This document shows positions 24,139 to 52,748 of a stretch of 64,000 nt of DNA, piece after piece. A program made the position numbers and the translations under genes. Every line of letters starts with the position of its first letter. Positions within the stretch are counted from its first letter, which is position 1. Source of the DNA: Trichosphaerium sp. ATCC 40318 (Eukaryota; Protista; Tubulinea); assembly GCA_038496445.1 (NCBI GenBank), contig JALMLS010000030.1, positions 124,001 to 188,000 of the forward strand, written 5' to 3'. The notes under the pieces are model-generated. The model made no database searches. It was not told the origin of the DNA and saw nothing but the letters and a program-made list of their open reading frames with translations.

Positions 24139-27100
24139 TCGGCTTACTGAGAAAATACAAACGAATTTACCATTCAATCAAGTATTATGTTACAGCAAAC
24201 AAGCGTTTTGAAGCTATAGTCGTAGCTCTACTGATGACAAGTCTTATGTACTTGCATCAAATTTATAACGAATAGTATCAACAACTCCACACTGTCACAA
24301 GCTTTTGAAAGTTGATCAGTGAGTAATTATACCACTTCTAAGACGAAGAGATATCTATGTGCAAGTTAATGCCTAACGCCTTCTTTAAATGATCTGTAAT
24401 CTTCTATTTCAAACACCAACGCCGACACCAGACCAAAAGCAGCAAGTCACAGCAAACACCCCCAAAAATATGTAAATAAGACTTTTTATACTACAATTGT
24501 ATACACATGGAGTCCCTCTCTGCACATTAACACTCTCGAGACAGTGAACTTTGTTTCATCTGACGCCTAATAACAAACAGTTGCGAATCTTCCTACTACT
24601 ATTACATATTAATCCTAACGTATTAACAATACAATGCAGTCCAATCGTAATAACAACAAACATATGAGAGTGTTTTCATTGAATAGCGCATCGGGTATTC
24701 ATCGGACAAACTTTAAGCATCACGTGACACACTTGTCAGTATTCAATGAATCAAATCCTCGAGACTTCTCGTCAAACCTTTCATTTAGAACATTCGTTAT
24801 ATATTTGTCGACACGTGATTTTACGTTGTACAAACAATATTCGGAGATGTAAACGCTCCACTAACCTCTTAAAAGTCAAAAAAAAAGAGACTTCAATACT
24901 ATTGGCGAGATGTAGTACTGCGGAGCGTATAGATGAACCTAATAATGTATTTGAGCCGAACGTTAAAATGTAAACCTATAATTAAACCGTTTCTAATTTA
25001 TGTAGAAGTAGGGTGTTCTTTCAGCGCCTTTTTTGTGTTTGAGATCAAAAATCCTCGTCAAATCACGCAAAAAAACGATCCGAGATTATGCGTGATGAAG
25101 TAGTGCAGATTCGTGCGACAAAGGTGCGGCGTAGTAAAGCAAGGTAGCTTTACAATATATGTTTCTTGCAGGTTGTTTGGGATGATACAATTAGGCCCGG
25201 AGCTCACACAATGATTCACATCAAGAATGTCAATCGTGGTCAAAACCACGAATAAATTAAACAAACGAACCAAACCAACAACAGCAACAAGTGAAACATG
25301 AATAGAAGTACAATCTTAGTTGTAATATGCACGCGTACGTATAATCAGAAGGCTTCTATATTGATTTTCTGCTGTTTTTTTCTTGTTATAATGTGGGAGT
25401 AACATAATTGTCTTTCTAGTTTTTGTAATGGCATTTGCCCAGTATGAACCTGAGATTTGTGATAGATGCTTGGACTGTAATATCACACCCTGCTTTAATG
25501 CAGGAGATGATTGCTATCAAAGGGTAATGGGTGGTGAGTGTTGGAGAATAGGAACCGACCATGTAGATAGAAACAGTACGTGCGGTTTTTTGTTTGTTTT
25601 TGAATTATATTAAATCAACATCACGTGGCTACGGTTTTGGTATTTTATAAGACTAAGTGCTTTATTTGTTGTTTCTGATACATTTATGCAAGTCGATATG
25701 GAAAGGGATTTATCATATCCTTGTATTTTTATCGAGCCGGGTGTTCAATTTTATGGCACCATTACTGGAACGAATGGGGATGACTGTCTCATCCTTGAAG
25801 AGGGTGCCGAGCTGTATTCACAAGTAGATCTAAAAGGAGGGAATGACTATGTATTAATGGCACCAGGTAGTTACCACGACGGAGACATGGTAATGGGTAC
25901 GTTACTTGCGTTGCTGCTTTAGTGTTTTTTGTGTTTTTGAACACAGAATATAACCTTTTGATACAGGAGGTGGTGATGATTGTCATATTGGTATAGTTTA
26001 TCAAACAGGTGATATAAATACAGGATCTGGAAATGATGCTATTTTTTCTTTTGGGCGTGCTTTAGGGTAAAGTATTTTTATTGTTCATCATAACCAAGTT
26101 GCTAATATTGTACCTTTAGGAATGAAGAATTCCGTATGGGAAGTGGTGATGATTGTTTGCTATTTAATATTGATCCTGGTCTCCTTGAACCATCTGGTAA
26201 GAAGAAAAGAGATGGAAGTATGACATTACGTGACTTGGGTGCTAGTACGTTTTCTTTCTTTTTTTTTTTTTTTTGGCGTTTTTCATGAAGAAACAAAATC
26301 ACTGTCTTCAATTAACGTTTGTTTTCTTTCTTCATGTACTAAGACACCTTTCCATAGTTGCTCAAGACGATTCCCCTATGGATAATTATTTCAGGATGAT
26401 GATCAAAGAAGGACTAAATTATCAACAACAAAACAGTAAACGAAATGAGGAACTAAGAATTAAAAATAATAATACCAAACCTGCTCATAAACGTTCCACT
26501 GAGGGAGGTACTGGCATTGGTGATGTTTTTCTTAATGCTGGAAATGATTGCGTACTATATACTGATATGGCCGTCTTTGGACAAACAAGAGGTATGCACA
26601 GACATATATTCTTAATTTTTTCTTATCATGTAAAAAAAAAACCTTTTGTGTTCTCTACAGTTCCATACATTCACATCATACATTTTTACCCTTAAAAAAA
26701 ACACTTTTTTTGAATAAGCAACCTAAAAAGCAAGGCGTTTCTGTGGTGGGGGTTAAAAAAAAGCGAAGAATTTGAAGTGTAACATTTGAAATCACTTTTT
26801 CAAAATACTCTCTCCAAAGTTTACTAGCCATATTCATTCTACTGTGTAATTATGAGTTAAGACTTTATTTAGCGGGAAGCGGAGATGATTGTGTTCAGGG
26901 ATATGATTTTGTATTGGGTGACAACATCATTGCTGGGTCAGGTGATGATGTTATAGATATTTTGGACTGGGGTATTATCTACAACGATAATTTACGTTTC
27001 CTTGGTGGTTTAGGAGATGATACTATTTTTGTTCGTATTGATAACTATCCGCCACCTACTCGTCGCCACGAGATTAACGGAGGAGGTGATACAGATTTTT

Positions 27101-27480
27101 GTTGCAGCAGATATTTCGCACCAACAACGGACCCAACAACAGCGCCAGTTAAGAGACAGGAAGGATATGGTGGTCCTCCTATGGCTGTTGATATCATAAG
27201 AGGATGTGAAGAGCTTTGTACTATGCCTACATCTACACCTACGCCTCCTTGATTCTAGCTTTTTTTTTGTTTTCTCTTTGACTTGATTTTTTACAGACTT
27301 GTTAGTTGTCAAACAAAAAAATCTGCAACATAGATAAAATAAAACGTTTTACATATTACAACCTGGATTCCAGTACTTGTTTTGTCATTTTTGTTTTTCT
27401 GTTCATTTTGCTTCAAGAGATTATGGTGTGCAATAACTAAGAAAAAACCGAGATTGTGTCATATCTTGTTTTTTTGCTTA
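24139..27480 (+). repeat. Left arm of ~3 kb inverted segmental duplication (partner 38076-41029)
   Basis: Near-identical reverse complement from TCGGCTTACT..GAGAAAATACAAACG to ..CCGAGATTGT..TATCTTGTTTT; left arm has two extra ~160-bp blocks (~25085-25245, ~26640-26800). Confidence 0.95.
25298..27252 (+). CDS. Secreted Cys-containing protein with RTX/hemolysin-type Ca-binding repeats, copy A
   Basis: Signal peptide MNRSTILVVICTLFVMAFA; GTNGDDCL, GGNDYV, GGGDDCH, GSGNDAI, GSGDDCL, AGNDCV, GSGDDCV, AGSGDDVI, GGLGDDTI, NGGGDTDFC; 7 exons. Confidence 0.8.
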
Positions 27481-27632
27481 TCTCTTACAGAGGTATTACT
27501 CCAAACAATTGTTTTGTACATTTTAATTTAATTTATTACAGAAAAAAAAAAGAGAATTGTAATCTTCTACATCGCGATAAAGACTTCTTTTCTACCAAGT
27601 TCCAGATCCAAAGAACAAAGGTTATTGTCTCT

Positions 27633-30600
27633 CTAGTGCTTAAACATCTGCGAAAGCTTAGACTTAGAAAGAGACCGTACACTCAATCGAACATCCTCTA
27701 GAGGTTGTTTTGTTGAGTACGTTACAATGTACGTTGGTAATATCTGTTCTTCCTAAAAAGAGCACGTGGTTAGAAAGGCTGACACAATAGTCATTCATTT
27801 CGTATTTATTTTTGGCTTTTTTGCCACGTGATCAAATAATAAAATCACGTAATAACAATTCCAACGAAAGAAAAAAGCAAAAAAAATTTACTAGTCTTTT
27901 TTTGATGTTTTTTTTTTCCTCTATGTTAAGGACTGTGAGTAGAGATATGTACCTGCGTAATAAATATGCCATCAAATGTTGGTACTTTCTTTATAGAATC
28001 TATAGGCACATGAACATTTCTCTTTTTATACAAAGGCAGATAATGTGCATCAAAGTCATTGATTTTAAGTTTATCTTCTTTTAATCTCCTTATATCTGCT
28101 TCAGTCATCGGAAGCAGCTAAAAAACGATGAGAGTGTATCTTTAAAAACTTGGATCATGATGATTACGTACGTTACTAACAGCTAAGAAACATAATAGTA
28201 GAATACCTTGGTTATCTAACCTAGCAGCATAATCTGCTTGAGGTGTAACATAAATACCACTACCATAATGAACTAAGAAACGTCAGTATTGTTTATCACG
28301 TACGCATTGCCATTAATGCTCTAATAATTTACCTGACTCAGAAACAGACAAACCAGCCGCTGCAATAAGAGGAATTTGGTCTTTCCTACAAAAGACAAAG
28401 AATCAGCACTGAAGACATCGAAATAAAAGAGCAACAAGAAGTTTGGTTTGTTGTTGAACTCAACATTAACTCTTTGTTCAAAGATATACGTACTTGACAG
28501 CATACCATACTGGTATTATAGTGACATTATTATGTGGTGCATATGTAAAATTTGAAAACCGTTTAAGTAACTTTGCACGTAGCTTTGCGCTACCTAAAGG
28601 TGATGCAGGAGGTGTTTTTTTATCTGAAACACGAATCGAAAGACGTTCAAGTTTTGTTTCGAAACTTTCTCTCAACTTATCATTACGTAAAGCCTAACAT
28701 ATTAAATGTTTAGTACATGCCAATCAAACAAAAAAAAAACTTTTTTCTGAAAAAGTCACGTGGTGGTGGAAGAGAGCAAAAAAAGTTGAACTTGCCTCGA
28801 TTTTTTCAATCGTAAAATTACGAGCGACAGCAATATCAGCAATGTGCTCATAGAAGATATCTTCGACAAGCTGACATTGCTCAACCACACTACTACTATT
28901 ATTACTACGCTTAATTTCAAGCGTATTATAATGCTCAGTCTTAACCCATCCTTTACGTTTGAGTATCTTTTTAGGGAAACGCCAAGGTGTTGGCATATTT
29001 CTATTTCTATCAACTTGCTTAGCTAATTGATTATCTATAAGTTTAGCTATTTCTTTATTGCCTGTCACGTGATATTAGTATATTGATATAATCATATTGT
29101 AAAGTACCTTTCTTTCTAGCATCATCAGAAGCTGTATCACCGAGTCTGTTACGAGAAATGGCGATATTGTTCTCAAGTAAGAATTTACAAACTTTTAAAT
29201 GTCCACCCCAAGCAGCTCCTTAATAAACTCATGTAAGTTTACATGTATTATAAAAATATCTTGTCGTACCATGCAAAGCAGTTGATCCGTGAATTTGTAC
29301 ATGATTAATATTTGCTCCAAGTTTAAGTAATTGTTTAACAATTAACATTTGTCCATGTCTTGCAGCACTATAAAGAATGGAACTTCCAAAATGATTTGGA
29401 TCACCAGCATCAATAGGACCACCTACACATGACCATAAACATTTATAATAAGGAACGCTATCACTCTTACCTTGATTTATCCAAGACATAGTCATAGATA
29501 CATTACCCGTCATGGCAGCTTTCCATGGATTGATGCCTTAACAAGGTTATTAAGTAGGGCTTTTTTTGGTTTATGCGCTTACCGGTGCTCTTTTCTACGT
29601 CTTCTGCAGATAGAAATGACTCTTCTACTCTTCCTGTATGATCTATACTTCTCTTACGAGAAGGTAATGGTACTCTACATCCTACAGACCTAGAAGATCC
29701 TCTAACTGATTTACCATGCCATTCTTTGTTCATATTTTTTTTAAGTTTAGATACAATCTTCTTTGCTGTAGGTCGACAAAAAGGATCACGTTGCCAGCAC
29801 TTTTTAATAAGTTTGACATAAAAATCAGGCCAAAGTCTTTCAGGTATTGATGGCCTTAGATCCTGGTATATTATTGCATCAACAAGCTTTAACTTGTCCC
29901 AGGTTTCTTTATATGCCATACCCTTTTCTTCATCCCAAAGAATTCCACTCTTACCTAAAATACTCGGTTAGTATTCCGCACAATATACACAATATACTGT
30001 ACCTCTTGACTTATATGAATCGTAATCAGACTTCGATACTTGTTGTCTATTCACATACTCCTCAAATTCCGAAAAAGGGTCTTGGCTGAAAAACTCAAGT
30101 TAGACGAACACAAGAAAGGTTTGTTGAATAGTGTACCATGTCATTAGCTCCCACAATAAAATACCAAAGCTATACATATCGCTTCGTTCATCGTAATGTG
30201 CTGCTGTAGGATCAATCACTTCAGGAGCCAAATAAGTGAATGACAGAAGCAACTCGCAAAGTGCAGGTCTCGTTTGAGCAGCTAAGAAAATTTTAAGAAA
30301 AAAGTCCTGGACGCTAAAACAATCTTCGTAATACCTAATCCAAAGTCTCCAATGATTGCATTTCTTTCAGCAGATGGATCAAGAGAAGTCACCTACACAA
30401 ATATTAGAAACAAGAAGAAAAACGTCCAGAAAAGTAGTCATACAAAAATATTTGCTGGTTTCAAGTCTCTGTGTGCTATAGGAGGTCGTAGTGTATGTAG
30501 ATGGTTCAAACCACGTGCAACATTAAGTGCAATCTTAATTTGAAGTTCCCAAGATAAATTACCCTTTAAAGAGAAGAAAAGTAAGCTTAAACCTGTGCTA

Positions 30601-33506
30601 TTATTTTTTTCCTACTTTTTTCAAATGATGATCGAGTGATTTATCAGGCATGTACTCTATGACCATCCTCAGTGGATTCTTGGTAACACCAATTAGTGAG
30701 ATAAGGTTAGGATGTTCCATAAAACTATAAACATATGAGTATAATATATAAAAAAGAAAAGGAGCACCTCGTCAAGTACGACTCATGTTGGAAAGCTAAA
30801 AATTTGTTCAAAAATTCCTCGTTCTCATCACGTTGATGTAACTCCTTTAGTGCAACAGAATTTTCCCCGATTTTACCCTTATAAACTTTACCAAATCCTC
30901 CTAATCGAGGAAATCAATAAGTGTAATTAAGCAACTGTTTAACAAACCTTGTCCAAGCACCTCCATAATTTCTACATTATCAATTGCTTTAGTATAAGCA
31001 AAGTCCATGTCTGGCGCTACTTCTATAAGACTCACAGCGCCTATGGTACACTCTTAGAATCGAACACGACTAGTAATTTTTACCTTGTGCAGCAGCGAAA
31101 GTATATTCTCCACGCATCACTGCACCAAGACAGACACTGAAAGGAACAAACTAGAAAAAAATGTTATAAAAAGTAATAGGTGACGGATTGTTTGCAATTA
31201 CCTGGTTTGCTACAAGTACTTCTCTTGAAACACGATTACTCAAGTGTCCGTAATGAAGCGTTATTAGCTGTTCAATACCATGAGCAATCTCAGTGAATAA
31301 GTCTATATCGCCAGTTTCACCAAGACCACTTAATAAAAAAATGAGGTTAAGCTATATTTTTTGTCTTTTAAGGCCTAAAGAACAACCCACTTACGAATCA
31401 CGTTTTCTTATAACATCAATCCATAAATTACGTTTCTTTTTAATATTACCCGTCGTGTATGATATTATAGCATGTTGCCTATTTAAAGAGAATAAACAAG
31501 AAATCTGGTACCGAAAAAAAAACTTTTTTTTTCCGTACTGGTTACTTATCTCAGCTTCCATATAATTTGCAAAAACTTGGGGTGCATTAACACCAGGTAT
31601 ATTATGTACTTTTGCTAAAATCCTTTCAAAAAAAGCGAAAGGGTATGCCGAAAACTCATATCTTCGGCCCCATCTATAATACTTTTTCATACTTACTTCC
31701 TATTTTAGGCAAAAGTAATTAATTAACCGATTCCTTTTTTTTTTGGACGTCACTTACTTCGTGTTCTTTGAATACATCCGTAAAGTCATTTCTATGCGGT
31801 AAAAATGTTGGTACAAGATACGATACTATCGAACCATTAACACGTGGTAGCGGGTATATAAGTTCGAATCTATCAAGTAACAGCAACATAGGTAGTTGTA
31901 AGGACTCTGGAACCCGTACACGGACTTCCTCCTAGCAAGAAACTATTAATTTCCGTTCATTTTTTTCGATCAAAGAAATGACTTACAAAAATGTCATCTG
32001 TCAAAGCTTGACCATTACTAACAATCCTCGAAATCGGTTTTATAAAATTAGTAACCAATCTAAAAATATAAAATCAACTGAAGATAACCATAGGTGAGAG
32101 CGAAGTAACAAAATAAATACCTTGGATCAACAATAACAATATTCTTCAACCGAATATCTGATTTAAAATGAAGAATAATGCCATGATCATTAAGAAAATC
32201 CGCTGCCTAGTAAGGTACCATAAGCGATTAGTGAAATGGTACAAGCTAATAACGTACTAGTTCAACTTCATCCTCAGCAAAATTAAGTTGATTCGTTAGA
32301 GTCTCAAATTGTTCATAAGTCATATAAAGAGTAGTTTTCCTCATCTCTATGACTTCTTCCATTAATCTTTTAAAGCGAACTGGCTTGCTCCCTCTTAAAC
32401 GTCTTTTGGAAACAACCTACCAAACACAAAAACGTGATCAGCACGCATACACACACAGAGGCCAAAAAACACCAAAGAAAAAAAACCGTACTGTGTTTAG
32501 TTTGTCTTTAAACTCATGTAAAATTTGAACTGCATCTCTTTTTTTAGTGGCACAATTCAAAACAACACAGTCAGTTATTGACTGTACTTTGAAATAAGAT
32601 TTAAGAGTATCACATGATTCAATTGCATCCTTTCTATTGACCTATACAATCACATAAGAACGTCAGAACACAACAACCAACCTTTCCAAAAAAAAAGAAA
32701 AAAAAAGCATTATTCTACTGTAAATCAATAACAAATAACCCTCGAATGGACTTTTGTCGCTGTAGAACGCGTTGGCAAGGTTTTCACGCAAAAATTCGTT
32801 GATTTTTTGTTACTTTCGAAATCTGTTTTCAGACGTTATGTACCTCATCGAAATGAGTCCCTACTAAGAATATAGGCGCATATTTTTGTCTAGAGCGTAT
32901 TGATTTTACCCAATAGTCCAAATGATGCGGGTTTGGGTCACGTAAGCTAAAAACGATAGTATAAATGCTGACGCTGCTTAGAACCTAAAGAGAGTATTAA
33001 AGAAAGAAGAAAAAAATAAAATGTCAAATACGGACTATTTAAACAAAAAGGTTACGGATTGCTACAATTATCCGTTTATGGCGAAGTAGTATGTATTTTA
33101 TTACAAAGATAGCGTTTAAACGTACGAATTGGTGCGTAGAGTAAAGTAAATCTGCTGAAAAGTCCCACACTTCCCATTCAACCTTGTTGGAGCGTCAATG
33201 GTATTTGTAAGCGTCATGGCGTACATTAGGTCCTGTAACGGTTTGAACGTGAATGCCATCGTTTTTAGGAGAAGAGGACGTTTCGTACGCGCTACCAGGC
33301 ACTTCTGTTGCAAAGAAAGAAGCAAACTGAGATTTTCCTAAAAGTTTTTTTTAACTTGTTGCTCAAACATGCTATGCAACACGCGTTTATACGCTACAGT
33401 GCTATATGATGGGATTTTTGAGTGCATAAGGCGAGAACAACGCACCAACTTGCCGGTGACCCAATATTATCAGGTTTACTCTGTTAATAGTAGCGTTTTC
33501 CTCCAT
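27633..33506 (-). CDS. Roco-family protein: Roc GTPase, COR, protein kinase, ankyrin repeats, degenerate PARP-like ADP-ribosyltransferase domain
   Basis: Roc: LIILGHRQVGKS, VWDFSA..YSTHQF, IFLVGTHFD; COR: FLNDHGIILHF..IVDPR, YLVPTFLP, YPFAFFERIL; kinase: LGQGGFGKVY, VALKE, HRDLKPAN, GDFGL, YLAPE, SDMYSFG; ANK: LYSAARHG, GSTALHGAAWGGH; ART: YGSGIYVTPQADYA..QILPTYIVTY. Confidence 0.85.
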
Positions 33507-33786
33507 TAAGAGCCAAAATAGTGGTGAGCGTTCTAAAACACTAACAGCCTACTAAAAAAACAAAAGAGCAAAGAGCACTGCCACACCTCTTGTGAGGATT
33601 GCGTGATTGTTGTACGGGGTAAGAAAAGTCAATACAAAAAAAAAACGGCGAATGACGTCTTTTTGCTTTTTGTTCTATTTTTTTCACGTTTTTCTGTCCT
33701 TCAGAGTAAAGCAACATACAAAGCTATTAGCTAATAATAAACCCAATTCAGCTAACACTATTTTGACACCCAACTAAGAAGGAATA

Positions 33787-34277
33787 ATGGAAGACAAGCT
33801 GAAAGAGTCTGATAAGTATAAGAATGATCTATTGAGGGATCAACAAGCTGTTACTGATAAGTTATTTGCCGAAGCTGTTGCTCCAGATAATATGCGTAAC
33901 GACTCATTTTTTAAATACGCCATACAAAGGCCGCCATTGTTCTTGGGTACGCCGTTAAAGTGTATTAAGAGTAATAATACTTGTCTAGGCATTGGTTTAG
34001 CGCTTACTGCGTTTGGTTGGTCCACATCGCTTTTTTTTAGAGGTTTACCTGCGTCAACTCCAACAATACTATGGATGCGCGCGTCTGGCATGTACGGATT
34101 AATTCTGTAATTTACGAAGTGTCATTAAAATCATATAGTACGCTCGTTCTAGGCTCATCGTTTATATATTCGGTAATAGAGAGCGATGAGTATAAAAGAG
34201 AGGTAAAAATTGCTCTTGATGAAAGAGATAGACTACGAGCAATAGAAAAGCAAAAAACACAAACTACTCGGCTGTAA
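33787..34277 (+). CDS. Small membrane protein, possibly HIG1/Rcf1-like
   Basis: 3 exons; FFKYAIQRPPLFLGIGLALTAFG..FFRG..WMRASGTLVLG resembles the HIG1 two-helix pattern. Confidence 0.4.
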
Positions 34278-34664
34278 CAGAGCAACTATGTCAAAAAATG
34301 AAAAAAAACCAAAAAACTGTCTAAATTCTTGCCAACCGATTTTGGCATCTGTACGCTATTGTATTTAATAAACAAACATCACTAGTTAGTCTACCTTATT
34401 TACTGATAACTTGGAGAGGACTTGGGACACCTCTCATTCCAGAACAAACGCCCAGAACTGAACAATGCAAAAAAATCTTCACAGCTGTTGCAAAAGAGTA
34501 TACCTAATACATATAATGAATATTGCAAGGGTCTGTGTTATGTTAACAGTATCTATCTCTTGATTGGCAGAATTCCACGTGTGGCTTAAGATAGCCCAGT
34601 TTCTGGTCTTTTTTAATTTAGACGCCGACTTCATTTTCCATACAACGAGTATTAATAATAAAGC

Positions 34665-35230
34665 ATGTCCCAGCTTCCTGTGGTAGTATTACCTCAATGT
34701 AAAGTTTCAAAACCAGAATCACGTGTTACGCGATCTCATACATCACGTGGGTTTACTAAAAAGAAAAGGTGACTCCGCTAGTTGTTTTGTTCCGAAAACT
34801 GTTAATTTGTTAAGCATAGGCGACACAGACGACGTCCTACATACCCGCCACCACGTTCGAGGGATAGTAGGCACATCAGATCCCTTGCGAACAAATATAA
34901 CGATGATCACGAGACAGAAGCAACAGAACCTACATTTAGCTTACGTAACGTGTATGATGCGCTTCCTGACCCAAATTCGGCTGTGATACCACGTGATATT
35001 AGACAATCAAGACCATTGAACCCAAAAGCAAAAAGGAGGCATACTCATCACCGCACTAGGTCTCACAGCTATAGTATAGCACTGGAACCATGTTTAGGCT
35101 CAGACAGTCCAGTCTTGAGGTAACAACTTGTTTTGTTGTTTAGCTGGTGCGACTCAATACTAACTACTATTCCAGGCGCTCTGTTTATTTAAAGTACAAC
35201 AGTTCAAAGAAGGAAGAAGGACATCAGTAG
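34665..35230 (+). CDS. Small basic low-complexity hypothetical protein
   Basis: Three exons join in frame with GT-AG introns: MSQLPVV..TKKKR/RHRRRPTYPPPRSR..SPVLR/RSVYLKY..EGHQ*. Confidence 0.5.
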
Positions 35231-35467
35231 GCCAATTTTGCATCGGTTTTTTCATTGTACACTACGTTGATTTCTAAGTGCATAGCGTTGCACAAGGATT
35301 GCCCAAATACACCATAATATGCCTATATTAGTTCTGTTATTCTCTAGCTATATGTTTATAAAATGCAATTCACTAATGAAGTTTCAAAACGCCGATACTG
35401 GACTGCGAATGAAAAACATCATAAAAATGTTGAGCAGAAAAGAAAAAGGATTGACTTTTCAGTTATT

Positions 35468-37487
35468 ATGAGCAATCTTTACGTCAACAGGCCTTCATGG
35501 GCTAATATTCCGCTATCTAACTTACAACAAACACATACAAAAGGTATTCTAGGCAGACAGCGTTTTACAATCCGCCATAACTTTTCCTTTTGCTAAAATG
35601 GACTAGAACAGCTTTCAGATGCTAATATACTACCTATTACATACAATGACCTTATTCATGACGTATTAACGGCCGAACAAGTACAACATTTCAAAGACGA
35701 CGGTTACCTTGTATGACTTAACTCGATTGTCGCTATTAAAACCGTCTTAACTTCTTTCGTAGGTTGTTCATGATGCGCTCAATAACGATCAGTGTAATGT
35801 AGTTATAGATGCATTAATAGATGCACTAAACAAAACAATGCTGAAAGAAGAGGAGTTTAAATTAAGTCGAGAAGATTACTCAACATTTGACATTTTGACA
35901 CATCCAAAACTTCGCAAAGAAAAGCTCAAAAACCCTGATGCGGTGTACTCTACAAAGAGAAAAGGGAAATGGAAGACACTAGAAATAGGTACTTTGACAT
36001 ACTCAGTAAAATCTAACCCACGTGATTGATAACAGGCACAGCTGGAATGACAAATTTCTTCTTTTTGCCAAGTGCAATGGTTTTAAAGTACAACAAAACG
36101 ACATACAACACCTTGCGCCAGCTTTATGGTGCTACTGATGTATGTGTATCTAAATTATCTCATATCTTGTTTAATCATTTTTAATAGTTGCATATGGCAA
36201 TGGAACGTCTTGGTGTAAAGGCCAATGGAGACAATAAAATGAGACTGCACATGGATGTAAACTTATTTTCTGTATGTTTTTTTTTCCTTTGGACTTTTCG
36301 ACTTTCTTCTTTGTTGGTTAATTCTCTTGTTCAGGATTTTGATCCGTTAACACGTATTCAATCTCTTTTGACTCTTGAAATTGATAAGGACTCTCCACCA
36401 GTAAGTTCTGGTACTCTTGCAGTAATTCCTGGATTCCAACACTATATTGGAGTGGCACGTGCTTTGATGCACCCTAAAACAGGTACAATAAATCAAAGAA
36501 ACATTTTCTTGTACTAAACAAGCCTAAGGATACAAGGAATTACGAGTACCTTATCCAACATGTGATTTTTTTTGCCTTGACAGAAAGGATGGTAAAAAAA
36601 ACATAAATTGGGAAAAGCAACATTTACCTGTACTTAATGAGTATATTAAAATGTGGACAATGATTCAACATCAACCTCAAGATGTACCCGAGGTATGTAC
36701 ATTATGATCTCTAATCAAGCTTAAAACCTAACTTGTAACAGGCAAGGAAAGCAAGTGAAATGCAGTCTATATCAACCTTTGATAGTAAATCTTTGTGGGA
36801 ACATGCTGTTAATGCACAGCGTTCTAACCCTGGTGTAACAGTACCCAAGGAGCATAGGCTTTTACGCGTTTTACCAATAAGAGCTCAAAAAGGTGATTTG
36901 GTACTATGGTCTTGGGCTCTACCTCACAGAAATCAAATCAAGAAAAGGACGAAAGGAAAAAAAATAAGGTACAAACTTTGCGCATCTATATTATGTCTAA
37001 TTACATGTTTCAGTCCACCACGTATTTGTGCTTATATGCAATATAATAAAGTTACTGGTCCCCACGGTAGTAGATATGAAGATGTTGAATATAGGAAGAG
37101 ATTATTCAAGCAAGTATTTGGCACTGTAGGAAAAAGATATCCCGAAAATGACTTGGAAAGAAGATGGGTTATGAACGAACTTTCTGTAGAAAAATACTCT
37201 CCTCTGTTCACTCAGGTACTACTTCAATAAAGGAAAATACGTGAGTATTATATCTATGGATAGTAACACTAAAATAGGATGGATTTTATGCTCATCCAAG
37301 GACAGATAACCTACTTCTCAAAGCGCTTTTGGGTTTTGATCCAAAAACTTTTGAAGATTTTACTTGGGATGATTATCGTTCTCTCAGTGTTACACCAGTT
37401 TCCACCAAATCAAAGCGAGAAGCCCCAGGAAAGCCATTGGTAGAACATATATCAAAAAAAAGGCGAACAGAAAAACCGACCAACTAA
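35468..37487 (+). CDS. PhyH-family Fe(II)/2-oxoglutarate dioxygenase
   Basis: LTAEQVQHFKDDGYLVVHDAL start; HxD (LHMD), IQSLLTL, SGTLAVIPGF, AQKGDLVLWSWALPHRN, PRICAYM. Confidence 0.8.
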
Positions 37488-37527
37488 AATACTGAAAATG
37501 TCAACAATAACTAATAAGATTATTTTT

Positions 37528-38050
37528 GAACAAATGACCTGTCTTGTTCTTTGAAGGGCACTAAATTAATTCCATGAATTGATTTGCAACTTCATAGTTA
37601 GATCTGTTAATGGCTCGGTCTCAGACCTCTCTTAAGCTTAGTTGAGTCAACAGGTGTCTGGCCAAACTGAATTGGTCCTAAAAAAAAACACGTGCAACTA
37701 ATATGACAGTTATACACGAGCAACGTATTTCAACCAACTTGACCTTTATATCCACAATGGCTGTACACGCGTTTTCTCCATTACAGACGTTTGGGTAAGA
37801 CTTGGTATGACTCACATAAATCAACTACAAACGCCGACAACGTGTATACAGAACATGGCGAGCAGCAATCACCCACATCCCACCGAAAAATTTCCTTTTC
37901 AATTTGATTTAAAATACTGTAAAACTTTCTTTTATTTCCAAGTGTTTCTTGTATAATATAACAAATGCTTGGCGCTGCGCTAGAGCCACAAGATATTTTG
38001 TCTTTCTCCCAACATCGTCTAAAGTTGATTCCTTGGTTAGTTGATAGAAG
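37528..38050 (-). pseudogene. Orphan spliced exons (3' remnant of an unidentified gene) abutting the duplication arm
   Basis: GT-AG-bounded segments reading ESTLDDVGRKTKYLVALAQRQAF / EIFRWDVGDCCSPCS / SYPNVCNGENACTAIVDIK; no start codon before the repeat boundary. Confidence 0.3.
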
Positions 38051-38075
38051 AGTAGTATTAGTGGTATAACTCTTA

Positions 38076-41029
38076 TTAGCAACAAAACAAGATATTTACA
38101 ATCTCGGTTTTTTCTTACTTATTGCGCACCGTAATCTCTGATCAGTCTGCTAGATATGAAGCAAAATGAACAGAAAAACAAAAATGACAAAACAAGTACT
38201 GTAATCCAGGTTGTAATATGTAAAACGTTTTATTTTATCTATGGGTTGCAGATTTTTTTGTTTGACAACGAGTCATGTAAAAATCAAGTCAAAGAGAAAA
38301 CAAAAAAAGCTAGAATCAAGGAGGCGTAGGTGTAGATGTAGGCATAGTACAAAGCTCTTCACATCCTCTTATGATATCAACAGCCATAGGAGGACCACCA
38401 TATCCTTCCTGTCTCTTAACTGGCGCTGTTGTTGGGTCCGTTATTGGTGCGAAATATCTGCTGCAACAAAAATCTGTATCACCTCCTCCGTTAATCTCGT
38501 GGCGACGAGTAGGTGAAGGATCCTCATCAATACGAACAAAAATAGTATCATCTCCTAAACCACCAAGGAAACGTAAATTATCGTTGTAGACAATACCCCA
38601 GTCCAAAATATCTACAACATCATCACCTGACCCAGCAATGATATTGTCACCCAATGCAAAATCATATCCCTGAACACAATCATCTCCGCTTCCCGCTAAA
38701 TAAAGTCTTTAACTCATTATTGCATTGTAGAATGAATATGGCCCTAGTAAACTTTGGAGAGAGTATTTTGCGCGGTTTTTTAACATGATAAGAAAAAATT
38801 AAGAATATATGTCTGTGCATACCTCTTGTTTGTCCAAAGACGGCCATATCAGTATATACTACACAATCATTTCCAGCATTAAGAAAAACATCACCAATGC
38901 CAGTACCTCCCTCAGTGGAACGTTTATGAGCAGGTTTGGTATTATTATTTTTAATTCTTAGTTCCTCATTTCGTTTACTGTTTTGTTGTTGATAATTTAG
39001 TCCTTCTTTAATCATCATCCTGAAATAATTATCCATAGGGGAATCGTCTTGAGCAACTATGGAAAGGTGTCTTAGTACATGAAGAAAAGAAAATAAACGT
39101 TAATTGAAGACAGTAATTTTTGTTTCTGTTCATGAAAATCGCCCAAAAAAAAAAAAAGATCACGTACTAGCACCCAAGTCACGTAATGTCATACTTCCAT
39201 CTCTTTTCTTCTTATCAGATTGTCCAAAGAGCTCAAAATCAATATTAAATAGCAAACAATCATCACCACTTCCCATACGGAATTCTTCATTCCTAAAGGT
39301 ACAATATTAGCAACTTGGTTATGATGAACAATAAAAATACTTACCCTGTAATACGCTCAAAAGAAAAAATAGCATCATTTCCAGATCCTGTATTTATATC
39401 ACCTGTTTGATGATTAAAACCAATATGACAATCATCACCACCTCCTGTATCAAAAGGTTATATTCTGTGTTCAAAAACACAAAAAACACTAAAGCAGCAA
39501 CGCAAGTAACGTACCCATTACCATATCTCCTTCGTGGTAACTACCTGGAACCATTACTACATTGTCATTCCCTCCTTTTAGATCTACTTGTGAATACAGC
39601 TCGGCACCAAATTCAAGGATGAGACAGTCATCCCCATTCGTTCCAGTAATGGTGCCATAAAATTGAACACCCGGCTCGATGAGAATACAAGGATATGATA
39701 AATCCCTTTCCATATCGACTTGCATAAATGTATCAGAAACAACAAATAAAGCACTTAGTCTTATAAAATACCAAACCGTAGCCACATGATGTTGATGTAA
39801 AAAAAAAAAAAAAAACACAAAAAACTGCACGTACTGTTTCTATCTACATGGTCGGTTCCTATTATCCAACACTCACCAGCTGTTACCCTTTGAAAGCAAT
39901 CCTCTCCTGTTTCAAAGCAGGATGTGATATCACAGTCCAAGCATCTATCACAAATCTCAGGTTCATACTGGGCAAATGCCATTACAAAAACTAGAAAGAC
40001 AATTATGTTACTTCCACATTATAACAAGAAAAAAACAGCAGAAAATTAATATAGAAGCCTTCTGATTATACGTACGCGTGCATAGCACAACTAAGATTGT
40101 ACTTCTATTCATATTTCACTTGTTGCTGTTGTTGGTTTGGTTCGTTTGTTTAATTTATTCGGGTGATCTCGGATGGTTTTTTTGCGTGATTTGACGAGGA
40201 TTTTTTGAATCTCAAACACAAAAAAGGCGCTGAAAGAACACCCTACTTCTACATAAATTAGAAACGGTTTAACACAAGGTTTACATTTTAACGTTCGGCT
40301 CAAATACATTATTAGGTTCATCTATACGCTCCGCAGTACTACATCTCGCCAATAGTATTGAAGTCTCTTTTTTTTTTGACTTTTAAGAGGTTAGTGGAGC
40401 GTTTACATCTCCGAATATTGTTTGTACAACGTAAAATCACGTGTCGACAATATATAACGAATGTTCTAAATGAAAGGTTTGACGAGAAGTCTCGAGGATT
40501 TGATTCATTGAATACTGACAAGTGTGTCACGTGATGCTTAAAGTTTGTCCGATGAATACCCGATGCGCTATTCAATGAAAACACTCTCTGTATTTCACAT
40601 GTTTGTTGTTATTAGGCTTCCAGATGAAACAAAGTCCACTGAATAGTCTGGAGAGCATTAATGTGTATACAATACAATGTCTTATTTACATATTTTTGGG
40701 GTGTTTGCTGTTTGACTTGCTGCTTTTGCTGGTCTAGTGTTGGCGTTGGTGTTTGAAATAAAAGATTACAAATCATTTAACGAAGACTAAAGCATTACCT
40801 TGCGCACACAGATATCTCTTGGTCTTAGAAGTGGTATAATTACTCACTAATCAACTTTTAACACTTGTGACAATGTGTGGAGTTGTTGATACTATTCGTT
40901 ATAAATTTGATGCAAGTACATAAGACTTGGCATCAGTAGAGCTACGACTGTAGCTTCAAAATGCTTGTTTGCTGTAACATAATATGTGATTGAATGGTAA
41001 ATTCGTTTGTATTTTCTCAGAGTAAGCCG
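38076..41029 (-). repeat. Right arm of inverted segmental duplication
   Basis: Reverse complement of 24139-27480. Confidence 0.95.
38316..40112 (-). CDS. Secreted RTX-repeat protein, copy B
   Basis: Same exon structure as 25298-27252 with reading frame intact. Confidence 0.8.
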
Positions 41030-41684
41030 ATACAAGATCAGTTTTAGGTTCATTTAGAGAAGGTGCTCGTTTATTGATATGTCGTTTCATTGTGCAATGT
41101 ACGGTTTGTTGTAAATTGAAGCCACCTACCTGGTCTTCCAGGTGTAATACCTTTTCTTATCGAATCATGCAAGCATCTGGTAGATATCCAACAAATTCGT
41201 AAGGGAAGGTATCCAATGTGTGGAAGCCAGCTAGTAGAAAACAATTAGATTTACTATACTTTGTCTGGGCTTAACCTGTTGCATCTTTGTAGTATATCCG
41301 TAACAATTCACCATTAGTAGTAACACAAATAAATGGATTGAGCTTGAAAGCAAACAAGTTAGCAAGAACAAAAAAAAGAAGGAAAGATGATATCAGTCAA
41401 GGGAATGCGTACTTAGTCCTTCGGTTTTAAAGTCGTTAAAGACATACTTAGAGCCTCCAGCAATTTCCCCGTCAGCACAGGCTGATACTACAAAATGTGA
41501 ATGAGATTGATCAAGGGTCAAAAAAGTGACAACACTGTTGACATACAAACTAAGTGGCCTTCACTAGCAAAATGATAGATTTTAGAGGTTCAATCAAAAC
41601 ACCATTCAATCGATGAAATAATGAAATTTGAGTAATGCATTTGTGAAAAAAATTCAAGTAAATCGTTTCAATCTCCAATGTTTA

Positions 41685-42135
41685 GATTGGAACAATGATC
41701 ATGTATGAGACAGTATTCTTTTGGACACTTCACAACCTTCATTGTAATGTTTTGAGATGGCTTCTTGGAGTAGGTTTTGCGTAAGTGAAATCATAATTTT
41801 GTAATAGCCATAGGATGTCGCTTTTCCCATTGAATAACACGTGATAGTTGGCTTATGGAGCAATGTTTGCTCGTATTTACAGAATTGGTCAAATATTTTT
41901 TGAAAAACGTTTGGCAGTCAAAACAGTCACCAACAGGATGATCCTTCCAATTGTTACTGGTATCGTTGTCACTGAGGTGCTGATATTGGCTATATGGACA
42001 GGTGTGAGTCCATCAAGAGCTGAATGTAAAGATGCGTCAACACCACACATTCTATCTGATGACTACTTTGAATGTTCAAACACAACAACAGATAGTGTGT
42101 TCATGTCAATACTAATTGCTTTAAATACTTGTATC
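41685..42135 (+). pseudogene. Partial copy (TM2-TM5) of the GPCR at 48797-52426, first piece
   Basis: Matches 51122-51565 (AYGAMFARIYRIGQIFFEKRLAVK..); no N-terminal domain; breaks off at LNTC. Confidence 0.85.
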
Positions 42136-48796: not shown

Positions 48797-51700
48797 ATGA
48801 GACAAGCAACAACGACTGTTTTACAACTATTGTTGGTTACATTCATAGTTATCACGTGGTCCCATGATCCCGTTATACGTATTGGTCTTATATACGGATT
48901 AAACAACAACATAACCCATTCGGGAGACCAACTTGCACTACAAGGTCATCAGATGTGGCAAGACGAAGTAATTTTTTTATCTGAGCTTTCTGCGATTGTA
49001 TTGACACTTTTTTTAATTTACCAGGTCAATGCTCGCGGCGGTATTACTATCAATACCATTAAACACCAAGTAGAACTTGTTCTGTTTGCATTTGACTATA
49101 GCTGTATGCAAAAGTTCTATTTAGCTCACTAATGCCTTCACCTAGCCTGGAATGATACCTCGAAGGAGGTCTGGGAAAATGGCGCCAGAAAGTTGATTGA
49201 CCAAGAAGTTGACTTTGTATTGTTGGTGCGTTGTTTGACTTTTAGTCCTAATTCTCGTATGTGCGATAACTAGCAGCCGCAGTATTACTGTTGTAGGTTA
49301 TTCTTCTTAAAATTAATAAGTGTAGCCAGCGCGTTGGACAGACTTTTTTAATATTATAACAAACGAACATGGAATCAACGCAATACTGCGTACGACTTTT
49401 TGTTAGAATTTTCCCTGTTGTTTTTGCTTTGTACTAGTTGAGTATCATACTTGAGTCACAGCAATGCCAGGTATTGGTGTTTGGTATTTATTGTTATAGC
49501 GCAACCTGTTCGACCTGAGTATAATGCATGTGATGAAAGATTAAAACCTCCATGTACTGTGCCTGTAGGAAGAAGGTTTAAATACTATTTTGGATTACTT
49601 GCACCATATGCAAACAGTTACACAGAATCTTTTAGCTTGTTGGCAAGTCGTGGTGCCCGCACTGTAGCCATTATATGGCCAGGTACTGTCAACTTCTTAT
49701 GTCGGCTTCATTTAAAAGCTGGACATTTTTTGGGACAAAAACATAAATTTTGAGTTTTCTAGGCTCCTACAATCACTTGACCTAGTTCAAACGTCCCAGC
49801 TTTACATCGAATCCTACACGTTATACATCTTAAGTGCTCACCAAATGTCTATGCTTAGATGGGGCGGGATATGACAGTTTAATTGAAGATGCAATTAAAT
49901 CTATGCCATTTCTTAATCTGACAGTTATATACACAAACAACATACCAGCACAAACAATAAACATGCTCAATGTATCCATAAAAAGTACATTGCGACCAAT
50001 TGTCAAAGAACTCAAGGAACATAATCCAGGTACACAATTTTTAAATACTGGTGAAAATGCTTACCAGACTTTAGATATTGTATTGATAGAAGCATTTGCC
50101 ATTTGTGGGGATTTTATCACTGTTTCAAAAGAGCTTGACTTTAATCCAAAGGTGTGAATTATTTCTTATGCGTTTTACTACATTGTACAAACTGTCAATT
50201 TTGTAACCTAACTTTGCTTTACAGGCTTATATATTTTCATATCTTTGTGTTAGTCCGTTTGATGAGATTACTGATGATTTAAAGTATACCTTGTCTATCG
50301 GATTTTTTGTAATACACTCTTATTATTCTATTTTATTTGAATAACTCATTTTAGTGGGACAAAAACCTTAACACTGAATTTCATGACGAAAACAACATGA
50401 CAAATTTCCATCATTTTGTGAGCAATGGAACAATCGCATCACCAATGATATTCAACAACAAGTATAAACAACGATTTGGACAGGATCCCACTGCTGTTGG
50501 TGCCATGGGTTACGTTTCAGGATACATAATTCAGTACGCGTATGAAACAGCAAAGTACGGCAACAAAAAACTGATTTTTTTATGTATCACGTGACAATCA
50601 CACATCTTGATTACCCTTTATATTAGTACATATGATGGTGAAACAATTCAACAGACAATCCTTACAATGGATATCACTGGGTTTTATGGAGAGGTTACTT
50701 TTGATAGGTTTGGTCAGAATAGCGGAAGGAATCGATTGGTGTATCAATATGGACAAGATCTCAATCAAAAAATTGTTGGTCCTCTTTATGCTGCAACTAC
50801 ACAGCTCATATATCCAGCTCCAAAACGGAATGAACGTCATACTACATTTGGATGGTACAGTACGTTCTTTTTATTTTCTTATTTCGTTTCTCTTTTTCTT
50901 CATTTATTCTCACTTTATTTGTATTTCAAGAACAAACAAGTGAGCTTGTGATGCTTTGTTTGGTTAGCGGTCTCATAGTCATCACTCTTGGTCTCATTCC
51001 GTGGGTATTAATATACCGCAACCATCGGGCAATGTGTGCATCACAACCTTTGTTCGTTGTACTTGCTCTTGTATGTTCCTAAATCTACGCAAACCTATTG
51101 TTCACTAATTTTTATTGTTTAGATTGGAACAATATTCATGTATGCGACTGTCTTCTTTTGGACACTTCACACTGATGATTTGCATTGTAATGTTGTGAGA
51201 TGGCTTCTTGGAGTCGGTTTTGGTGTAAGTCAAAATTTTGTAATACATAGTAGGATGTCACATTGACTAACACGTGATAGCTGGCATATGGAGCAATGTT
51301 TGCTCGTATTTACAGAATTGGTCAAATATTTTTTGAAAAACGTTTGGCAGTCAAAACAGTCACCAACAGGATGATCCTTCCAATTGTCACTGGTATTGTT
51401 GTCACTGAGGTGCTGATATTAGCTATATGGACAGGTGTGAGTCCATCGAAAGCTGAATATGAGCAAGTGTCAACACCACACATTCTATCTGATGACTACT
51501 ATGATTGTTCAAACACAACAACAGATACAGTGTTCTTGTCAATACTCCTTGCTTTCAATACATGCGTATTGTTGTATGGCATTTATTGGGTGTTCAGAAT
51601 ATGGAGATTGAAGGCTGTTCTTTACAACGAATCAAAGTACGATAGTAGCAATATTGAAAATCCATCTGAATTTGAATAGATCAATTGGATTCGCAGTTTA

Positions 51701-52426
51701 CACTCTTACATTCTTTATCATCATCTTCATCATCGTTCAGGTACCACTTATTGTATTTAATGAAAAAAAGCTTTTAATACTTGTTTAGGTGTTTGGAAGT
51801 AGCAATCGTCCAGTTGCATTTATTCTTCGTTCCTCGTGTCTTATTCTTGGACCTTTCATCTCCATCTTATCAATTCTCATTCCAAAATGTATTACATGAC
51901 ACTTTCAAAAGAACAACTTGCTATCTATGATAGAGAAAGTGATAAAAGAACAACATTATCCAATATACCAACAGCTATGACAACAATGCAAGAGTTGCAA
52001 GCGACCAATGAAGTACTACAAGAGAAAATGAAGATATACAAAGCCAAAAAAGAAAAAAATGTGAAACAACTTGGTGACAAACTAATAACAATACAAGAAT
52101 TGCAAGCAACTAATTCAAAACTACGAAAACGAGTAAAGAAATACAAAAAAGAAAGAACAACATTATCGGAAGCATTGAAAACAGTTCCAACAATACAAGA
52201 GTTACAAGAATTGAAGGCAACCAACGATAAACTGCAAAAGCAATTGGAGGAATACAAAAAAGAAGAAAATGCAAAACAATCCAATGCACTGACAACAACT
52301 ACAACAATACAAGAGTTGCAAGCAACCATCGACAAACTACAAAAGGAACTGAAGGAATACAAAGAAGAAGAAAATGAGAAACAATCAGATGAAAAAAACG
52401 ATTCAGACTCGGAGATAGTGTTGTAG
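48797..52426 (+). CDS. Class C (GABA-B/Grl-like) GPCR with Venus-flytrap ectodomain and repetitive coiled-coil tail
   Basis: Signal peptide; VNARGGI, RRFKYYFGLL, DFNPK, GFYGEVTFDRFGQN, LIYPAP; ASQPLF, MFARIYRI, LYNES; tail repeats T(M/I)QELQAT. Confidence 0.85.
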
Positions 52427-52556
52427 TCACAACAGCAATCATTAGTTTTAGATGTTTAACGTTCAATAAATAAACTTTGTATTTATACCAAAATAGAGCC
52501 GTGCCAGGTCCGAAAACTTTTGGAAATTATTTTTTGTCCAAAGGAGAGATGATTTC

Positions 52557-52748
52557 ATGCAATAGAGACAGCTTTGAGGTTGTTCTAAAAAAAACACAAA
52601 AAAAATCATTTCTTCATTTTGTGGCGTACTTGTACATTTCATGTTTATAAAAAACTGCTGTTTACTGTCGGAGTAGCTGCTTTTTGGATATAAAAAAAAT
52701 CGTATCTCTTCCTTTTCCGAAGCAGTTGTGCTGGCTGTTAGGTTATGA
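52557..52748 (-). repeat. Inverted partner of 46897-47089
   Basis: Direct sequence comparison. Confidence 0.9.

Follow-up and report, generated by a model that had tools for sequence, protein, structure and literature searches.

Hypervariable exposed positions on a conserved solenoid scaffold are found in the LRR-based variable lymphocyte receptors and in the LRRs of plant NLRs. The calcium β-helix of the ice-binding adhesin from Marinomonas primoryensis (MpIBP-RIV; PDB code 3p4g) has the turn consensus G-T-x-G-x-D, and RTX proteins (PF00353) carry G-G-x-G-x-D-x-U-x-like turns followed by short strands. Similar turns, also followed by short strands, recur in the products of two genes, A and B, of the amoeba Trichosphaerium sp. 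ATCC 40318, whose scaffold has so far been known from bacterial adhesins and toxins. The original prediction for this locus held that A and B are two RTX copies that differ almost only at nonsynonymous sites, as a signature of diversifying selection. Here, we describe the locus and assess that claim.

Results

Two intact genes in an inverted duplication

Genes A and B are best explained as real, recently formed paralogues that arose when one member of a lineage-specific family underwent inverted segmental duplication. They lie in a 3.3-kb inverted duplication whose arms are 90 to 98% identical by block (blastn/MAFFT), with one intact gene in each arm. Coordinates refer to the window, that is, the whole 64,000-nt stretch of contig JALMLS010000030.1 that was analyzed.

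24139..27478, forward strand: arm A, aligned by blastn/MAFFT with the reverse complement of 38078-41030
25298..27252, forward strand: gene A, 411 aa, 7 exons, frame continuous over six GT-AG introns
25298-25334, 25420-25575, 25693-25896, 25967-26066, 26120-26244, 26358-26591, 26873-27252, forward strand: exons of the gene A model
26639..26800, forward strand: A-specific insertion of ~160 nt in intron 6, an alignment gap in B
27479..38077, no strand: unique 10.6-kb inter-arm spacer
38078..41030, reverse strand: arm B, the blastn/MAFFT partner of arm A
38316..40112, reverse strand: gene B, 411 aa, 7 exons, open reading frame (ORF) and all splice sites intact
40112-40076, 39990-39835, 39718-39515, 39444-39345, 39292-39168, 39056-38823, 38695-38316, reverse strand: exons of the gene B model

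A whole-arm DNA search of the 70-Mb assembly found only these two near-identical arm copies. Both arms are internal to the contig, their outer and inner flanks are mutually unrelated unique sequence on all four sides, and the spacer is single copy in the assembly across positions 29000 to 35000. The sole read data touching the window came from one low-coverage short-read run, in which two contigs of 151 nt were 100% identical to copy A, with exact matches at 19 A-specific variant bases. The A-only insertion in intron 6 is TE-like, and the arms differ by further indels as well. The core of this insertion (26656-26776; query 2518-2638) has similar dispersed copies on five other contigs, including matches at 74 to 80% on C3, C92, C70, and C63.

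Gene A encodes a predicted N-terminal signal peptide (MNRSTILVVICTLFVMAFAQ), and a signal peptide is present in both genes. A GTACGT donor is found in four of the six introns of gene A, whose splice sites are also kept in three further paralogues (C, D, and E) that lie in tandem on another contig and show variation of the same kind as A and B. A pseudogene reading was rejected because ORFs, splice sites, Cys residues, and motifs are all intact in both genes. An Rfam search over 23.5 to 41.5 kb gave no match.

An almost orphan family

The RTX label did not hold up in the exon-by-exon Pfam search, where the best match to PF00353 (exon 7; E = 6.6) scored 7.2 bits, where the cut-off is 23, and the other exons had none; single-exon Pfam searches gave no family match. 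Among PDB sequences, phmmer and profile searches found no match at E values up to 10, and a word search that used a 240-aa open frame from paralogue C returned nothing. A profile of exon 7 had only two distant matches among 1.84 billion protein representatives. The best distant match (P0001) passes PF00353 (26 bits), and the look-alikes proposed by a protein language model were RTX clusters (0.91 to 0.93). The A/B family is almost an orphan.

Variable residues lie at a fixed register on a conserved scaffold

The encoded proteins contain one G-x-G-(D/N)-D per unit, with a motif-to-motif spacing of 19 to 24 residues. The model of exon 3 is a β-solenoid with a strand period of 21 residues (pLDDT 89.4); a fold of exon 7 predicted from five sequences was discarded (pLDDT 39.5). 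Variable and conserved parts are arranged as follows.

25516..25584, forward strand: variable part of the Cys-rich cap, gene A, codons 33-55, with nine residues replaced between invariant Cys residues
25800..26198, forward strand: variable turns of solenoid 1, gene A, codons 101, 117-127, 142-144, 162-165, and 185-192
26199..26591, forward strand: conserved KKKR...HKR-flanked spacer, comprising the end of exon 5, intron 5, and exon 6
27043..27054, forward strand: variable turn of solenoid 2 (NYPP/EDPS), codons 343-346, in the same register, after GGLGDDTIFVRID
27157..27249, forward strand: C-terminal peptide that follows a KR site, with no difference between A and B

The gene models bear out much of what had been read from this region. 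Nine codons of exon 2 differ and all nine change the amino acid; every peptide pair that had been quoted is present in A versus B; and none of the Cys residues or GxGxD-type motifs has changed, nor has the KKKR...KR spacer. The variable span of the cap crosses the exon 2 donor (exon 2 ends at 25575), and the cap positions that vary between A and B also vary among C, D, and E. Codons 193 to 273 show no amino acid difference between A and B (pN = 0 in codons 193 to 256). In the alignment, all five paralogues share an unchanged QEGYGGPPMAVDIIR core and both Cys residues of the C-terminal peptide; substitutions and changes of length occur beyond that core.

Variable residues had also been proposed to follow the repeat motifs and perhaps to map to one face of the fold. 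The first proposal is supported by a register enrichment: at offsets +5 to +9 after G(D/N)D, 12 of 46 residues changed, compared with 11 of 110 elsewhere (p = 0.014). For the second, the exon-3 model puts the changes in or beside the turn across the coil from the GxGxD turn and at every other position of the short strand, facing outward and flanked by invariant residues. This fixed register is consistent with one edge of the modeled β-solenoid.

Coding and noncoding DNA have diverged about equally

Divergence between A and B is about equal in exons (4.45%), silent sites (3.7 to 4.0%), and introns and flanks (3.9 to 5.6%). All noncoding DNA of the arms differs at 84 of 1,664 positions (5.0%, or 3.85% without columns near gaps). 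The introns, most of whose sequence had been described as nearly identical, differ at 31 of 554 positions (5.6%), and no intron other than 3 and 4 is free of differences. These two introns and a substitution-free tract of more than 300 nt (24666-24977) adjoin blocks with 6 to 10% divergence.

The coding sequences have 55 nucleotide differences in 42 codons, 36 with a replacement and 6 purely silent (Nd = 45.25 over 970.5 sites; Sd = 9.75 over 262.5 sites), which is a weaker bias than differences "almost only" at nonsynonymous sites. Whole-gene dN/dS was 1.28 (NG86), 1.18 (ML), or 1.54 (LWL85) and not significantly above 1 (binomial p = 0.36), a result that the original prediction had itself named as counting against it. 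In codons 21 to 192, pN was 8.6% and pS 4.5% (omega 1.9, p = 0.22).

Clustering of changes in noncoding DNA is comparable to that in exons, with 11 adjacent pairs versus 1.95 expected. Multi-base clusters make up 26% of noncoding events versus 41% of exon events, and clusters in exons (5 to 7 changes) exceed those of noncoding DNA in size. Within clusters, codon positions 1 and 2 differed in 24 of 44 cases, versus 7 of 22 for position 3 (hand count). DGR-like adenine-specific mutation was rejected, since the substitutions affect all base classes.

Clustered mutation inflates standard tests of selection

Site and branch-site tests were run on the five paralogues A to E only, and our own M0 likelihood equaled that of IQ-TREE. 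The comparisons M1a/M2a, M7/M8, and M8a/M8 gave 2ΔlnL values of 48.6, 49.0, and 48.4, respectively (44 to 50 over the standard models, and stable to topology and gap removal); p was about 1e-11 for the classical site test, which recombination among paralogues may have inflated, and about 2e-6 for the branch-site test. In M1a, about half of the codons fell into a class with an omega of ~0.03. Allowing double and triple hits improved the fit by a 2ΔlnL of ~133. With these hits included, the site test dropped to a 2ΔlnL of 5.5 (p = 0.064, with 37% of sites at an omega of 1.7) and the branch-site test of A and B to p = 0.083. Clustered mutation inflates the classical dN/dS signature, which does not prove selection.

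Partitions set independently of the A/B comparison gave a modest replacement excess. Replacements between A and B fall preferentially in columns variable among C, D, and E (odds ratio 3.9, p = 2e-4), where pN(A,B) is 8.8%, compared with a pS of 3.7% (p = 0.024) and a noncoding divergence of 5.0% (p = 0.014). By a count that is robust to multi-base changes, 17% of C/D/E-variable codons are replaced versus 9 to 9.6% of noncoding triplets changed (p = 0.025). Overall, the replacement excess over silent and noncoding change at these columns is ~2-fold (p = 0.01 to 0.03). In the reciprocal test, C/D/E pN at A/B-variable columns (0.22 to 0.28) was not above C/D/E intron divergence (0.18 to 0.27). 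Changes derived on the A lineage and on the B lineage fell within two codons of each other in 11 of 18 cases versus 4.9 expected (p = 0.002). Because changes from the two lineages colocalize, a single mutational event per patch cannot explain the patches. The replacement-rich positions evolve at least at the speed of neutral DNA and probably at about twice that speed. Diversifying selection, the core of the original prediction, gains support from the enrichment of replacements at C/D/E-variable columns, their ~2-fold excess there, and their fixed register, but not from the pairwise omega or from the multi-hit-aware tests.

Discussion

We propose that the A/B family consists of secreted, Cys-capped proteins built of 19- to 24-residue β-solenoid coils, each of which would pair a single variable turn with a single conserved turn of the calcium type (G-x-G-(D/N)-D), presumably calcium binding. 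Both copies have changed by ~4 to 5% throughout since they were duplicated, much of it as short multi-base clusters. Purifying selection would have kept the scaffold (21 Cys residues, the motif turns, and the hydrophobic core positions, together with the dibasic-flanked spacer and C-terminal peptide) and would therefore have concentrated replacements in the cap, the exposed turn, and the outward strand positions of solenoid 1. The replacement-rich positions are those that are variable in the three older paralogues. For a young pair with a conserved scaffold and a ligand-facing variable edge under mild diversifying selection, we see an even chance; diversifying selection on fast-evolving surface loops is plausible, if unproven.

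Unconstrained loops hit by multi-base mutation could also, with no positive selection, yield replacement-rich clusters that mimic a dN/dS above 1, and we take this to be a serious possibility, if short of an even one. It would fit the equal divergence of exons, silent sites, and noncoding DNA, the occurrence of multi-base clusters in noncoding DNA too, the nonsignificant multi-hit-aware likelihood tests, and C/D/E hot columns that evolve at about the intron rate; moreover, multi-nucleotide changes are on record as the source of this type of artefact in branch-site tests (bioRxiv 10.1101/165969; PMC6332903). However, given that roughly half the codons are under strong constraint, pure neutrality predicts a whole-gene omega near 0.5 rather than the 1.2 to 1.5 seen, and the a priori partitions still give a 2-fold excess. 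Neither the greater size of exon clusters, nor their bias toward codon positions 1 and 2, nor the independent changes that strike the same patches on both lineages is readily explained in this way. The present case is mainly cautionary: equal divergence, a conserved scaffold, and clustered mutation can together yield a striking replacement excess, and standard codon tests can be misled by mutation clusters between young paralogues.

Two further explanations bear on the history of the arms. Gene conversion might have homogenized most of two old arms and left unconverted islands, or might have copied patches from family members, as had been suggested for this locus; the mosaic of substitution-free tracts and identical introns beside 6 to 10% blocks is of this kind, and seven A/B-variable sites have both states among C, D, and E (at codons 33, 36, and 42, for example, B matches C). 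Yet consecutive sites never agree as a tract with any single paralogue among C, D, and E; instead, they alternate in state, and the whole-arm DNA search found no other exon-like locus in the assembly, which leaves the suggested patchwork with no donor. The islands span merely 3 to 8 codons, and their third positions are less diverged than their first and second positions, the opposite of what old neutral islands would show. We thus consider conversion improbable. Very improbable, in our view, is an assembly artefact in which alleles of one locus were misjoined as an inverted repeat, an outcome that the original prediction had listed among its possible refutations. Divergence of ~5% is within the allelic range of some protists, and the assembly that is the likely source had been purged of haplotigs (PMC10521059), but the contig-internal arms with their unrelated unique flanks, the single-copy spacer, the TE-like insertion and other arm-specific indels, and the similar variation of the three tandem paralogues all argue against misjoining.

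Should diversifying selection really act on the loops, the family, nearly an orphan, would become a candidate for a recognition system in an amoebozoan that has received little study. More speculatively, and as a minority possibility, these genes may form part of a germline repertoire of secreted molecules for recognition, in which the diversifying turns of a calcium-stiffened β-solenoid would serve as the edge that binds prey, kin, or viruses and new specificities would arise by local inverted and tandem duplication followed by positive selection.

Comparison with known systems

In structural comparisons, Foldseek found no match to the exon-3 model in the PDB at E ≤ 0.001, and many unrelated solenoids outscored the RTX chains. 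The model aligns to the RTX lipase 2qua (Z 3.6) and to CyaA 6sus (Z 3.1). A/B proteins differ from RTX proteins in having one motif turn per 19- to 24-residue coil, whereas RTX proteins have two per 18 residues (tandem 9-residue units). Their genes are eukaryotic and contain introns, the products carry an N-terminal signal peptide as well as a Cys-rich cap and dibasic sites, and a type I secretion context is absent.

The M. primoryensis adhesin has one calcium-type turn per ~19- to 21-residue coil, which the A/B spacing fits, and the highest identity among the top rows of structural matches to exon 3 (18%; Z 4.3, RMSD of 1.9 Å over 61 residues, a Z not above the solenoid background). That Z lies below the level that separates solenoid subtypes and below the score of bactofilin (Z 6.4, also above the RTX chains), and a sequence match of A/B to the PDB chain is absent. 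The functional face of 3p4g is the row of calcium turns, whereas in A/B it is the opposite turn that varies.

With the LRR systems, the A/B family shares a conserved repeat framework, variation at a fixed register, tandem and inverted family expansion, and high dN/dS. The fold and motif are different, selection is only plausible in A/B, and evidence of somatic assembly or of a binding partner is lacking. If the germline repertoire is real, it would be a eukaryotic, solenoid-based counterpart of the variable LRR receptors.

Two intact genes in an inverted duplication

In this eukaryotic assembly (70.3 Mb, 642 contigs), the window, with a local GC content of 34-40%, carries a 3.3-kb inverted duplication; a 10.6-kb spacer separates its arms, which have a blockwise identity of 90-98%. 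Each arm contains an intact seven-exon gene (A and B) encoding a 411-aa product, with GT-AG introns of 52-281 nt.

Features of the duplication and gene A
24139-27478 (+), arm A
41030-38078 (-), arm B
26199-26210, KKKR, dibasic site bordering the conserved spacer
~26530-26540, HKR at the end of exon 6, dibasic site bordering the conserved spacer
27151-27249, KR followed by a C-terminal peptide of ~30 aa with two Cys

The protein runs from a signal peptide through a six-Cys cap and five solenoid coils to the KKKR...HKR-flanked spacer, followed by five to six more coils, a CC pair with a Thr/Pro linker, the KR site, and the C-terminal peptide. This dibasic layout, as read from the sequence, resembles that of a proprotein cut by a kexin/furin-type protease; of the gene's products, the C-terminal peptide may thus be under the strongest constraint. 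No residue of the peptide differs between A and B, and all five paralogues share its core (QEGYGGPPMAVDIIR) and both Cys without change. The other three, C, D, and E, lie in tandem on contig C124, have the splice sites of A and B, and show 70-73% DNA identity to A with introns counted. The genome has at least 24 further members of the family, all more distant. GTACGT forms four of six donor sites in A and in B, and likewise in C, D, and E; this genome may favour it as its donor consensus. In C, D, and E, the Thr/Pro linker ahead of the C-terminal peptide is a TSTPDP hexapeptide array of varying copy number, reminiscent of a mucin-like stalk that differs in length; A and B contain no such units.

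TSTPDP arrays in the older paralogues
L005:1501-2010, paralogue C, ~9 units
L008:9190-9642, paralogue D, ~6 units
L010:5410-5802, paralogue E, ~1 unit

Several other elements lie in or near the arms. The ~140-nt stretch upstream of both genes, which is 100% identical between arms, has copies on at least 8 other contigs (83-96% identity) and is thus a dispersed repeat; it had no match in Rfam. The second duplication, downstream of arm B, is separate and includes a Q/E/K-rich coding segment with internal repeats, resembling a coiled coil.

Other elements
24648-24785 (arm B, 40449-40606), dispersed repeat
24490-24660, further A/B indel block
25087-25244, ~158-nt insertion in arm A only, immediately 5' of the start codon of gene A
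41670-42124 and 51107-51557, second duplication, 84-95% identity
45704-47055 and 51561-52747, second duplication, 84-95% identity

Divergence between A and B

All of the peptide differences listed in the original prediction were found, and in exon 2 all nine changed codons are replacements. The claim that the copies differ almost only at non-synonymous sites, as a signature of diversifying selection, does not extend to the whole coding sequence, in which 55 nucleotide differences fall in 42 codons (36 replacements, 6 purely silent); this silent share is as neutrality predicts, and the dN/dS signature is not significant (p = 0.36). By NG86, YN00, and ML, dN was 0.047-0.049, dS was 0.037-0.040, and omega was 1.18-1.30; LWL85 gave a dS of 0.029 and an omega of 1.54. 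Nor is most intron sequence nearly identical, as had been stated: introns differ by 5.6% (31/554), exons by 4.45%, and all non-coding arm DNA by 5.0% (3.85% once columns up to 5 nt from a gap are dropped). Divergence is mosaic in exons and non-coding DNA alike, with zero substitutions in introns 3 and 4 and 24666-24977 and 6-10% in introns 2, 5, and 6 and 24139-24489.

Gene conversion from other family members had been proposed to have patchworked A and B. No donor was found in the assembly: A/B states alternate in which of C, D, and E they match, and the exons resemble no other locus. It is also unlikely that the arms are mis-assembled haplotypes of one locus, since unrelated unique sequence adjoins all four arm boundaries, the spacer is single copy, and a TE-like insertion in intron 6 is private to arm A. 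In reads from one low-coverage run, 19 variant bases specific to A were recovered exactly. A and B are a real gene pair with fast-evolving loops.

Clustered changes and tests for selection

We fitted codon models to the five paralogues with our own likelihood program, whose M0 lnL (-4213.722) equals the IQ-TREE GY+F3X4 value. Standard models strongly favoured a positively selected class.

Standard codon-model tests (2dlnL)
M1a vs M2a: 48.6, omega 4.0 in 17% of sites
M7 vs M8: 49.0
M8a vs M8: 48.4
M1a vs M2a, two alternative topologies: 46.0 and 49.8
M1a vs M2a, gapped columns removed: 44.1
Branch-site, A and B foreground: 21.6, p = 2e-6

Codons changed at two or three bases are known to mislead such tests (bioRxiv 10.1101/165969; PMC6332903), and 13 of the 42 changed codons are of this kind. 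Adding double- and triple-hit rates, with several starts, improved the fit by 2dlnL ~133 and left a site test of 2dlnL = 5.5 (p = 0.064; omega 1.7 in 37% of sites) and a branch-site test of 2dlnL = 1.9 (p = 0.083). Non-coding arm DNA served as an independent control for clustering: adjacent changed pairs numbered 11 against 1.95 expected there, and 14 against 2.4 in exons, with genuine clusters outside exons such as ATAA/TGTG and TGTGTAATT/AATGCAATA. When changes within 5 nt were merged, event density was 27/1233 in exons and 34/1375 in non-coding DNA.

A signal remained when columns were sorted as variable or invariant by C, D, and E alone. A/B replacements were enriched at the variable columns (22/128 vs 14/276; OR 3.9, p = 2e-4), where pN was 8.8% against a pS of 3.7% (p = 0.024) and a non-coding divergence of 5.0% (p = 0.014). 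With each codon counted once, 17% were replaced there, against 9-9.6% of non-coding triplets with any change (p = 0.025). Polarisation with C, D, and E gave near-equal shares per lineage (18 A-derived and 17 B-derived codons), and the two sets co-localised within 2 codons (11/18 vs 4.9 expected, p = 0.002), which rules out single mutational events as the cause of the patches; at codon 101, for example, Y became E in A but F in B. Pointing the other way, pN among C, D, and E at A/B-variable columns (0.22-0.28) is not above their intron divergence (0.18-0.27). Within the family, pairwise omega ranges from 0.5 to 1.3 and is highest in the youngest pairs. We read about half of the protein as a strictly conserved scaffold and the remainder as evolving at the neutral rate or up to twice as fast. 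Diversifying selection on the A/B loops is plausible, with the balance about even, but not demonstrated.

Repeat structure and distant relatives

Motifs recur every 19-24 residues, and each unit has a single G-x-G-(D/N)-D turn. A fold prediction for exon 3 from 25 paralogous sequences was confident (pLDDT 89.4) and shows strands in a 21-residue period of motif turn, 4-residue strand, short turn, and 7-residue strand. A/B differences concentrate at offsets +5 to +9 past the motif (12/46 vs 11/110, p = 0.014), which comprise the non-motif turn and alternate short-strand positions whose neighbours are invariant. The suggestion that variable residues may lie on one face of the beta-roll fits this register and the model, its basis being periodicity and the predicted structure of one exon.

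Database, family, and fold searches were run exon by exon, and the spliced CDS was used for codon statistics only. Pfam gave no family for any exon (HemolysinCabind scored only 7.2 bits; cut-off 23). The exon-7 profile had two matches among 1.84 billion representatives, and the better one, P0001, is its sole clear outside relative: a 1,724-aa repeat protein from a 7.3-kb contig (NCBI source), with an N-terminal Calx-beta domain, a marginal HemolysinCabind match, and ~40-residue 'NNxIxMxGGxGxDTLxhxLxADAS' units. This architecture indicates that repeats of long units, each with one motif turn, also occur beyond this genome. The exon-3 model matches beta-solenoids, none of which stands out: it aligns with bactofilin (Z 6.4), autotransporter passengers (Z ~5), the calcium-dependent ice-binding helix 3p4g (Z 4.3, RMSD 1.9 Å over 61 aa, 18% identity), and RTX chains (Z 3.1-3.6).
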